From positions 672,425 to 728,403 of the forward strand of contig NC_069000.1 of NCBI RefSeq assembly GCF_001194135.2: 55,979 bases of DNA, given 5' to 3'. Made by a program: the position numbers and the translations under genes. Shown piece by piece: positions 32,101 to 35,100 of the stretch. Numbering within the stretch: position 1 is the first letter of the stretch; every line of letters begins with the position of its first letter. This DNA is from Octopus bimaculoides. Taxonomy: Eukaryota. The notes under the pieces were generated by a model. The model saw nothing but the letters and a program-made list of their open reading frames with translations. It did no database searches and had not been told where the DNA came from.

Positions 32101-35100
32101 TTATAAGTCTACTTGAACTAGGTTAAACAACAACATTGTATATTGTGTGAAATATTATATTGAAGAGAGGAAAAGATGGAAGGAGTTAAAAAGATTTATC
32201 TCATTTGTGAAAATATTTGTTCTTACCAGATTTCTTCACCGATTTTTTCTTTTAATTTTCTCTTAACCATTTTCTCTTCCCTCAGCATTCTGTGTCCTCT
32301 GCTACTCAATAATTGCTGCATTTTCACTTTTGAGTGGTGCTAAGAAATTACATACTCAACTCATTGCAAACATTATGCGATGTCCAATGAAATTCTTCGA
32401 CACTACACCTCTAGGTCGCATCATCAACCGATTCTCAAAAGACACTGACACAGTTGATATGGTTATACCAACAATTATACCACAAGTTATCCGTTCAATG
32501 TTCTTTATTGTCACCATAGTTGTCTTGATTTGTTATACAACTCCTACCTTTTTAGCTGCATTACTACCTCTCGTAGTTGTTTATTATTTAATACAGGTCA
32601 GTACCTTTTTTTGTCTCTGTCAACTCATATTAACAGGGAAGCTCCCGCTTCTGATGTCCTATATACAAATTAAGATTATTGTTGTTATGTTTATGTATTT
32701 ACTTTTTCAAACTTCCTGATGTGAAATTGTGTGTTGAAACAGTTATTGTTATATTTGGGGATAGTCACATTGTTTTGTCAGTTAAACACACACACTGTGT
32801 ACTTGGTCTTCACTTCAGCTTTGTTTTTATTCTTATATTACATGGGTAGTTTATCCTGTTCATGCTATATCATTAGTATTATCCTGTGTTTGAGAATAAA
32901 ATTATTTCCTTTCAATAAAGCTGAAGTGAAGACCAATATATAGGGCATGTGGTTAATTGGCAAAAAATATGACCATCCCCAAAAATAACAGTATTATTAT
33001 TGTTATTGAGCCCCAAGTGACCTCTCTCTGTGTTGATGGTCCCAAAGGTTTTTTTTTTTTTTACTTGTGGTTCATTTTGTTTATAAAATCTTAAAATATA
33101 TTTCAAAAATGTATCTATATACTTTGGCCCATAATAATTTAAACTGGAGAAAATTGTTAAGTATTCACTTTATTTAATAAACAAGGCTTCATATTTAGAA
33201 TTTCAAATCAGAATTTTATATTAACATTCCTAACAGTTATAAGATAAGATTTTAACCGTTCTTTGATTGAAACATCATTAAGGGAAGAGGGTTTAATGAG
33301 ATTAATACAATGAGTCCTCAAACAGTATTCAGTTGATTAAAATTATGTTAGACAACTGTGAAATCCAAATTAATTAAATGTTTGATCAGGGTATAAAGTA
33401 AGGAGTGAGTGTGGTCTTTGGTAAGTAGTGACAACTCTAGACATGTTTCAGTCTTATTAGATCTCCTCAGCAAAGTATAATTTTAACATTACGTGCCACA
33501 TCTTAGATGACAGAGATAAGAAGATATTGAATGAATGAATATTGATTTCAAACTCTAGCACAAGGCCAGCAATTTCGGGGAAAGATGTAAGTTGATTACA
33601 TCAATTGCAGTGTGCCACTGGTACGTATTTTATCAACCCTGAAAAGATGAGAGGCAAAGTCAACCTTGGCAGAATTTGAACTCAGAACATAAAGACAAAC
33701 AAAATACCACTAAGCATGTCTGCCAACATGCTAACAATTCTGCCAGCTCTCTCCCTTCAACCAATGAATATTGACTGGCAGACATGACATGTACATTATT
33801 TTGTAATTTGTTTTGTATTGTATTGATAATTGTGATTATTACCACATATTTGATTTGCTTTTTTGATGTATTATAAGAATAGTGTCTTGGGAAGATAATC
33901 TGTGTTTTGATCTATTCCAGAGATATTTTATACCAACTTCCCGGCAACTAAAACGTATCGAGTCTGTGAGTAATTCTCCCATATACAGTTTGTTTAGCGA
34001 GACTGTCCTTGGGGTCAACAGTATCCGAGCATATTGTATGCAGTCATACTTCATTAATCTCTTTGAAGATTTAATTAATGAAAATCTTCTTGCACTTTGC
34101 CTTCTGAAGGTTGTCAACAGGTAAACACAGTCCTGGCATATTCCATATTTCCTTTACCAGCACATCATTCCAGTGTTTTACTAATCTCTCTCTCTCTCTC
34201 TCTCTCTCTCTCTTTGCTATTACTGTCTCCCATTAAAGGCTATCTGTTCAGTCAGATTTTGGTCTAAACAATAACAGCAACCATTGCCTGCATATACATC
34301 AAAGCTTGCTTCCTCCTCCTCGTTGCCGACGTTGACATCATCATCATCATCATCATTAATACTTTGTCATTGAATCTAGATGGAAGTTCACTGAAGTGTT
34401 TAGTCATCTCTCAAGTCACAACAAGGTAATACTCAAACAGATGATACTTTCTTTAGAATGCAGATATAAACGTCTCTTTGAAAATCAAAGAAAAAAGAGG
34501 ATATCTATGGACAACTGCTTCAAAACCTGCAGCTTCTCTATCCAGGCTATGAATTCATATTCATACCAATAATAATTGGAGCACTAGGTTTTGTTAGTAA
34601 ATGCTTAAAGGAGACTCTGGATAAAGAGAAATTGACCAGCTGATTCATACATTACAAGTGCAATCTGTGAGTGGAACAATAAAAATATGCAAGACTTTTC
34701 TCAAGTTCCAAATTTTCTCAAGTTCCCAAAGATGGAGCCTTATATCTTTGTTGGAAACTGGCTCCCTCCTCAGTGGAAGATTTATAATAATCAAAAAAAT
34801 AGAAGAGACATACATGCTACTGACTTCTTTCAGTTTCCATCTGTCAAATCCACTCAAGGCTTTGGTTGTTCAGTGCTATAACGGAAGACACTTGCCAATG
34901 GTGCCATGCAATGGGACTGAACCTGGAACCATGTGGTTGGAAAGCAAACTTCTTACCACATAGTCATGTTTGCACCCATTCCATGCAGCCACAACCCATA
35001 CACACATACAATTATATTTATTTTTGCTTTTATTTCATAATAGTATCTTATAAGATAATTATAAAGTACAAAGACTTTCTTTTACATGTCTAAGACCAAA

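Follow-up and report, generated by a model that had tools for sequence, protein, structure and literature searches.

Near-identical patches set in old divergence between two versions of an MRP1-like ABCC transporter region of Octopus bimaculoides: a probable case of short-tract gene conversion

The window analyzed here is a stretch of 55,979 nucleotides (nt) from the genome of Octopus bimaculoides (contig NC_069000.1, positions 672,425 to 728,403 of the forward strand), and all coordinates given are positions within it. It contains two versions of part of an MRP1-like transporter gene of the ABCC family, copy A on the forward strand, which belongs to a longer gene (gene A), and copy B on the reverse strand. 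The feature at issue lies in exon 22, numbered as in an earlier note on this DNA. In copy A this exon occupies 32286-32596 (+) and is defined by AG/GT splice sites, an open frame and its translation, by a tblastn match to amino acids (aa) 1040-1148 of the scallop MRP1-like protein P0123, and by alignment to MRP1 chains in the PDB. It codes for residues aligned to MRP1 positions ~1028-1130, comprising the end of transmembrane helix (TM) 13, a cytoplasmic loop, TM14, and TM15. The copy B exon, at 53830-54140 (-), has the same length and frame, canonical splice sites, and no stop codon.

The two versions of exon 22 align without gaps and change abruptly in similarity at a single point. Up to 32466 only 2 of 181 nt differ (32333 A>G and 32445 C>T), and from there on 40 of 130 do. 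This edge falls at exactly the base named in the earlier note, with A 32466 (+) pairing with B 53960 (-) and the shared sequence ending in ...GATATGGTTAT. The breakpoint (32466..32467, +) separates the last identical base from the first difference, which is the third base of the codon equivalent to I1087 of MRP1 (ATA versus ATT), and in both copies it sits inside a contig free of Ns (30473-36701 for A and 49677-55979 for B). Maximum chi-square analysis placed the break of exon 22 between 32466 and 32467 (chi2 = 57.0), a value matched in 0 of 2000 permutations (P <= 5e-4). The longest run identical between A and B measured 111 nt, compared with 39 nt on average and 110 nt at most over 20,000 permutations. 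At third codon positions of the exon, 0 of 60 differed 5' of the break and 20 of 44 differed 3' of it. Runs of identical third positions, 60, 32, and 24 long, had permutation P values of 2.8e-4, 2.8e-3, and 4.6e-3, respectively, with P = 2e-5 for the sum of squares.

Near-identity extends upstream of the exon into the intron. The whole tract covers 32102-32466 (+) in copy A, ~365 nt that comprise 184 nt from the end of intron 21 and 181 nt from the start of exon 22, and its counterpart in copy B is 53960-54343 (-), as established by blastn (32102-32628 against 54343-53797) and base-by-base alignment. The intron part carries 9 substitutions and 3 indels (95% ungapped identity) and the exon part the 2 substitutions already listed (98.9% identity), so that the copies of the tract differ by 11 substitutions and by indels of 1, 6, and 12 nt, and neither is a copy-paste of the other. 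On the 3' side follows an old, diverged block at 32467-32632 (+), which holds the TM14-TM15 coding sequence and the first ~36 nt of intron 22. Its exon part is 69% identical in nucleotides and 64% in amino acids, with a synonymous divergence (dS) of 1.14, a nonsynonymous divergence (dN) of 0.24, and a dN/dS ratio (omega) of 0.21.

Self-comparison of A and B revealed five blocks of similarity, every one of them centered on an exon, and full alignment of the two N-free contigs resolved three classes of A/B divergence, or age. The youngest class has dS = 0 and contains exon 21 with the first 123 nt of intron 21 (191/191 and 121/123 nt identical), 32102-32466, 33999-34094, and 36652-36701. The intermediate class, with dS of 0.19-0.26 and about 88-90% identity, consists of the 5' part of exon 23 (exon 23a) with its upstream intron flank, exon 24, and the 5' end of exon 25 (exon 25a). 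In the oldest class, 32467-32632 and 34095-~34190, dS reaches 1.14 and 1.65 and identity is 46-71%. The dS of zero held over 59, 31, and 16 codons, compared with 1.14 and 1.65 in the adjoining blocks. Over the 100 nt flanking the tracts identity falls to 47-49% (49% upstream of 32102 and 47% beyond the tract at the start of intron 21), and most of the remaining intron sequence, comparable to the oldest class, showed only patchy collinear matches at 62-72%, which is above a reversed-sequence control. Both copies have open frames, canonical splice sites, and omega values of 0.2-0.4. Inspection of the tract edges revealed neither a common motif nor a simple repeat.

Exon 23 displays all three classes within 200 nt. 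It lies at 33921-34120 (+) in copy A and 52159-52358 (-) in copy B, aligns without gaps, and is divided into an intermediate part (33921-33998), an island (33999-34094; 52185-52280 in B), and a diverged end (34095-34120, exon 23c), with dS of 0.26, 0, and 1.65 and identities of 89.7%, 99%, and 46%, in that order. The 71 nt upstream of the exon are 90% identical. An island of about 96 nt with one difference had been claimed earlier and is borne out: the single difference is at 34035, after which 14 of 26 nt differ and the B side reads ANSALLIINR. The older and the younger tract of this exon stop at the same base, 34094. Just past that edge, 14 of 19 nt differ between 34095-34113 and 52184-52166, and a gapped alignment (+2, +1, -3) brings similarity back. 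The ~5 codons concerned, which precede the Arg equivalent to R1197 of MRP1, may represent a compensated frameshift in a stretch too short for a test.

The remaining shared exons complete the mosaic. Exon 21 of gene A, which encodes TM12, lies with the adjoining start of intron 21 at 49317-49576 (+), a position misplaced in the scaffold and recognized by tblastn (aa 968-1041) and contig-end overlaps. The partial exon 21 of copy B with its intron start, at 55789-55979 (-), runs past the window end and is identical to that of A; by blastn, 49386-49576 is the reverse complement of 55789-55979 at 191/191 nt. The intron 21 5' tract continues at 30473-30595 (+), where it pairs with B 55780-55658 at 98.4% identity and ends abruptly at 30595. 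Exon 24 (TM16), at 35254-35374 (+) in A and 51099-51219 in B, is 88.4% identical, with dS 0.24 and omega 0.39. The 5' part of exon 25 (TM17) occupies 36624-36701 (+) in A and 49677-49754 (-) in B; 36624-36651 is diverged and takes in the codons equivalent to Y1243 and R1249, and 36652-36701 matches B 49726-49677 at every base. A 100-N gap cuts off both contigs within exon 25.

Translations of A and B are ABC_membrane domains, and both best match the MRP-specific model TIGR00957 (MRP_assoc_pro), with CFTR second. Stitched copy A (1052 aa) scored 903 bits (E = 4e-271) and copy B (293 aa) 268 bits, below the full-length cutoff of 1470 bits because the queries are partial. PF00664 and PF00005 each matched gene A in two stretches, and once the scaffold pieces are reordered the gene has a TMD0-TMD1-NBD1-TMD2-NBD2 layout (TMD, transmembrane domain; NBD, nucleotide-binding domain), with exons collinear with aa 23-1549 of scallop P0123; copy B shows TMD2 alone (aa 991-1282). 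P0123 is the closest named full-length relative, at 45% identity. Word-indexed protein searches revealed no relatives closer than 48% (TM13-17) or 59% (NBD1), and an exhaustive search of 1.84 billion representatives returned nothing above 46% identity. P0121 (305 bits) was rejected as a close relative since its score came from an internally repeated gene model.

The best PDB matches were bovine and human MRP1 (E = 1e-54, HMMER), which align here without gaps. The break had been assigned to P1088/E1089 of MRP1, and this is right to within one codon: it lies at the codons for I1087/P1088, with E1089 one codon and K1092 four codons farther on. At this point the bovine chain has the sequence dsmipqvikmf, where bovine Q1088 corresponds to human E1089 (PMC12647609). 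Copies A and B have Thr and Leu at the E1089 equivalent, Pro and Arg at K1092, Asp and Phe at Y1243, and Cys and Arg at R1249; both have Gln at the M1093 equivalent, and the equivalents of R1197 (Arg), W1246 (Trp), and N1245 (Gly) are also the same in the two copies. Copy A is unusual at 36651, 36633-36634, 32480-32482, 33971-33973, and 34035, where B and most homologs keep conserved residues. Among these, it carries Asn at 33971-33973 in place of an Arg found in 74% of outgroups, and Cys for Arg at 34035. Two of the Cys/Arg pairs between A and B are TGT versus CGT, that is, CpG-type transitions.

The genomic setting of the two copies has to be read with care. The window contains 29 N gaps, and five 100-N joins split it into six pieces: S1 (1-4866), S2 (4967-30372), S3 (30473-36701, copy A), S4 (36802-43291), S5 (43392-49576), and S6 (49677-55979, copy B). 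Their ends overlap in an order other than that of the scaffold. S2 ends in exactly the same 49 nt with which S5 starts (30324-30372 and 43392-43440), and the end of S1 is the exact reverse complement of the end of S4 over 49 nt (4818-4866 and 43243-43291), which suggests that 1-4866 is really downstream of gene A in the opposite orientation. The end of S3 is the reverse complement of the start of S6 over 50 nt, and the end of S6 is the reverse complement of the end of S5 (191 nt) and of the start of S3. All of these overlaps can be accommodated by one chain that contains one bubble: S2, S5, then either S3 or the reverse complement of S6, then S4 and the reverse complement of S1. At either end S3 extends exactly 50 nt beyond the outermost A/B differences, the first at 30523 and the last at 36651; these offsets are the mark of de Bruijn graph forks at a k of ~50.

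Protein order agrees with the overlaps. In tblastn with full-length P0123, gene A was recovered as aa 23-620 in S2 (12694-29379), aa 664-1041 in S5 (44245-49556, with NBD1 and TM12), aa 1040-1282 in S3 (32270-36701), and aa 1321-1549 in S4 (37966-43183, stop codon 43184-43186). S5 (+) holds the NBD1 exons at 43609-43644, 44245-44382, 44881-45060, 45557-45667, and 46090-46245 as well as exon 21, and S4 (+) holds the NBD2 exons at 37966-38031, 39223-39372, and 40649-40819 and the last coding exon. Successive protein segments straddle the join between S2 and S5 (29924-29992, then 43609-43644), and S5 evidently belongs between 30372 and 30473, some 13 kb upstream of its place in the scaffold. Together, overlaps and protein order imply that the apparently intergenic 13 kb between A and B are displaced pieces of gene A. 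No further exons of B were found on either strand of the window. With pieces of the scaffold out of order and B an orphan fragment, a picture of two neighboring, convergent genes is not secure.

S4 and S5 are broken into 12 and 11 contigs, some the size of bubble arms (103-166 nt), and S2, S3, and S6 are clean by comparison. One possible reading of this fragmentation is that there are two nearly identical versions of the flanks; a duller alternative is low G+C content (28-32%) together with sized gaps. The region 42000-50000 has the lowest G+C content of the window (28-32% versus 32-39% elsewhere) and coincides with the most fragmented assembly. At seven 10-N gaps the contig ends on the two sides duplicate each other exactly over 34-49 nt and represent unmerged overlaps (39179-39256, 39903-40010, 40380-40595, 40951-41058, 44518-44625, and 47850-47957); one of these, 39179-39212 = 39223-39256, repeats a segment of the NBD2 Walker A exon and would introduce errors into a gene model. 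In style the assembly is akin to drafts made with Meraculous and HiRise, for example, the giant squid genome (PMC6962438), with ~5-kb contigs, 100-N joins, and unmerged overlaps of 34-49 nt, a likeness that amounts to compatibility only.

Other features of the window were repeats. An interspersed repeat of ~140-150 nt, resembling a short interspersed nuclear element (SINE) or a miniature inverted-repeat transposable element (MITE), occurs on both strands at 75-87% identity, with copies at 687-829, 1733-1876, 7073-7126, 9609-9768, 10981-11036, 17273-17396, 18937-19008, and 35858-35989, one of them in intron 24 of A. Introns of gene A also contain an inverted-repeat pair (21113-21298 and 21976-22160; 186 nt, 93%, arms ~680 nt apart) and a tandem repeat (20785-20969; ~46-nt unit, about 4 copies), and a second inverted pair (2196-2261 and 2487-2552; 66 nt, 95%) is in S1, outside the mapped exons of gene A. 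The inverted and tandem repeats may be foldback elements or MITEs. Scanning the window with Rfam and for tRNAs returned nothing.

We consider it probable that short-tract gene conversion took place between deeply diverged versions of the TM13-TM17 region and that the break at 32466/32467 is the 3' end of one such tract. The earlier note had taken the abrupt edges for ends of conversion or recombination tracts, a reading supported by the identity of silent sites and intron flanks next to intron sequence that is otherwise nearly unalignable. In the sequence of events that we propose, a non-reciprocal tract of ~365 bp would have replaced, in one version of the MRP1-like ABCC gene, the 3' end of intron 21 together with 181 nt at the start of exon 22. 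Young patches of this kind would number at least four (exon 21 with the beginning of intron 21, the 5' part of exon 22, the exon 23 island, and the 3' part of exon 25), and earlier exchanges would have left the older patches in exon 23a, exon 24, and exon 25a (dS about 0.2), all of them set in an old background with dS above 1 and introns at best 62-72% identical. The patches would be centered on exons because only exons are similar enough to seed pairing, and a tract that halts at the TM14-15 block is most simply explained by an inability of strand exchange to enter sequence already ~30-45% different. Tract lengths like those seen here, ~100-370 nt, are typical of gene conversion. In the TM14-15 block, A and B are at the same distance from 115 outgroups (0.300 versus 0.298), as expected of old, symmetric divergence between paralogs. 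We infer from these patterns a conversion mechanism with homology-limited termination and a copy B that is a paralog rather than an allele. A third, distant donor of the TM14-15 block is not favored, as the introns are equally deep in divergence and A and B are symmetric with respect to the outgroups.

Several observations weigh against this explanation. The comparison involves two sequences with no orthologs found, so that phylogenetic incongruence, the classical proof of conversion, is not shown. Copy B is an orphan 6.3-kb piece that merges at both ends into A-identical sequence, which is a graph bubble that a divergent haplotype would also give. Exactly shared stretches of 69, 111, and 59 nt, all above the apparent k of ~50, were traversed in the assembly; switches of path inside the copies are therefore possible, with the identity profile unaffected, and both junctions are known from the assembled sequence. 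Without any recombination, the 5' half of exon 22 might simply be under far stronger purifying selection than TM14-15, and this segment is indeed more conserved family-wide (mean outgroup identity 0.45 versus 0.30). Such an account is effectively refuted, and we give it practically no weight, by third positions that differ at none of 60 sites against 20 of 44 and by 184 nt of intron at 95% identity beside an unalignable intron; near-identity at silent sites and in the intron leaves protein constraint no explanatory role. An assembly artefact, in which gap closing or consensus drew on reads of the other copy and the break marks where the real sequence resumes, would suit a fragmented short-read draft with N gaps, unmerged overlaps, and mis-ordered pieces, and the exact shared stretches exceeding k in the tract would have needed read threading. 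It is nevertheless highly improbable: cross-filling would not produce the substitutions and indels that distinguish the tract copies, the copy-specific variant 32445 C/T is only 21 nt from the break so that ~50-nt k-mers join both sides in each copy, the pattern is seen at four independent places, and path switching swaps flanks and can neither make nor erase a break in a pairwise identity profile. Gap filling contaminated between the copies thus appears unlikely. More serious, though still quite improbable in our estimate, is the reading of A and B as hyperdivergent haplotypes of a single gene, with B a haplotig parked at the scaffold end by a proximity-ligation scaffolder and the mosaic produced by long allelic recombination or conversion. 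Retained haplotigs scaffolded beside their counterparts are a well-known source of false duplication; here every exact end overlap fits a single linear locus with one bubble, B has no other exons in the window, and it stands at the window end, which is probably the end of the record. Against this, the introns, rich in indels, can be aligned in patches only, and two blocks have dS above 1, all of which is far past what alleles ordinarily show; paralogs at separate loci would be just as likely to have contig breaks at identical tracts, and the shared unitig stops at a fork (49385/55979), meaning that the sequence upstream of B differs from that of A. B is probably a paralog, a view for which the depth of intron divergence argues strongly.

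A further possibility accepts conversion and attributes its edges to selection. The earlier note had proposed selection against homogenizing the substrate pocket; in its divergence-island form after Teshima and Innan, conversions homogenizing the pocket in TM14-15, before TM16, and at the start of TM17 would have been removed. Models by Walsh (1987), Innan (2003), and Teshima and Innan (2004) reportedly describe islands of divergence held against conversion. We regard this as unlikely, if worth keeping in view, and no positive evidence for it emerged: the omega, dS, and dN of the TM14-15 block indicate purifying selection and old age, and a tract that ends where homology collapses is expected without selection. 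What speaks for it is that the pocket-equivalent differences (E1089, K1092, Y1243, and R1249) are at or just past tract edges, which is suggestive only. Those at E1089 and K1092 begin 4 nt past the 32466 edge, the first base of the Cys/Arg codon at R1249 (36651) is the last difference ahead of the identical exon 25 tract, and the coincidence at 34094 of two tract ends of different age points the same way. The plastic pocket of MRP1 takes in E1089 and M1093, and its glutathione (GSH) pocket R1197 and R1249 (PMC12647609). The residue at R1249 is Arg in B and in 86% of the 115 outgroups and Cys in A and in 0% of them; at K1092, Arg is found in B and 36% of outgroups, and the Pro of A in 0%. Exon 25a is far more derived in A (outgroup identity 0.24 versus 0.40 for B), and the bubble-arm-sized contigs of S4 and S5 could mean that all but the core is nearly identical between the versions. 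On the other side, the diverged blocks have omega of 0.21 (TM14-15) and 0.35 (exon 23c) with high dS, and so look old rather than adaptively accelerated; A and B are equidistant from outgroups in TM14-15; the M1093, R1197, W1246, and N1245 positions are the same in both copies, and the helix of R1249 is partly within an identical tract. Mutagenesis of MRP1 is so dense that nearly any boundary has a functional residue close by, and E1089A had little effect on vincristine transport (PMC12647609). It is distinctly unlikely, in a broader form of the idea, that two versions of the pocket helices (TM14-15, pre-TM16, and the TM17 start) are kept apart by selection as their surroundings are homogenized, whether as paralogs with truncated tracts or as ancient hyperdivergent alleles under balancing selection. 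On that reading copy A, which lacks conserved basic pocket residues (R1249 to Cys, and the K1092-equivalent Arg to Pro), may have a shifted substrate range; on our analysis it has probably shifted in function, since R1249 contributes to the GSH pocket (PMC12647609).

If short-tract conversion between paralogs is the true explanation, the locus provides further evidence of mosaic evolution in duplicated detoxification transporters. For this ABCC cluster, phylogenetic trees, dN/dS scans, and copy counts would then be misleading unless made segment by segment. With the NBD1 exons and exon 21 of gene A displaced by ~13-19 kb and B an orphan, gene models, or a tail-to-tail gene pair, taken from the record are unreliable. 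Were the pocket helices protected from homogenization, or were the two versions ancient alleles, the locus would be a natural experiment on substrate diversification of MRP-type pumps.

Interlocus gene conversion between duplicates is familiar from human gamma-globin (HBG1/HBG2), RHD/RHCE, the red and green opsins, and ABCC6 with its pseudogenes ABCC6P1 and ABCC6P2. A literature search on conversion among invertebrate ABCC paralogs or on cephalopod ABCC families found nothing specific. The octopus locus resembles the human cases in its near-identical tracts of a few hundred base pairs that include silent sites and intron flanks, in their abrupt edges, and in a mosaic of several ages; it differs from them in a background unusually deep (dS >1) for active conversion and in copies that are probably, rather than certainly, separate loci. 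Compared with divergence islands, it likewise has TM14-15 and pre-TM16 blocks flanked by homogenized sequence, with differences at functional residues at the edges, whereas its omega of 0.21-0.35 carries no evidence of selection and homology-limited termination would give the pattern neutrally. The orphan 6.3 kb, its ends identical to the primary path, and the inverted 100-N join at the scaffold end recall false duplication by a retained haplotig, from which the locus departs in internal divergence far past normal heterozygosity. It also stands apart from its MRP1/ABCC1 relatives, with at most 48% identity over TM13-17 in two very large libraries and with Cys and Pro in copy A at conserved basic positions. 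Mosaic paralogs formed by conversion are a textbook phenomenon, to which this locus would add a case rather than anything new in kind.

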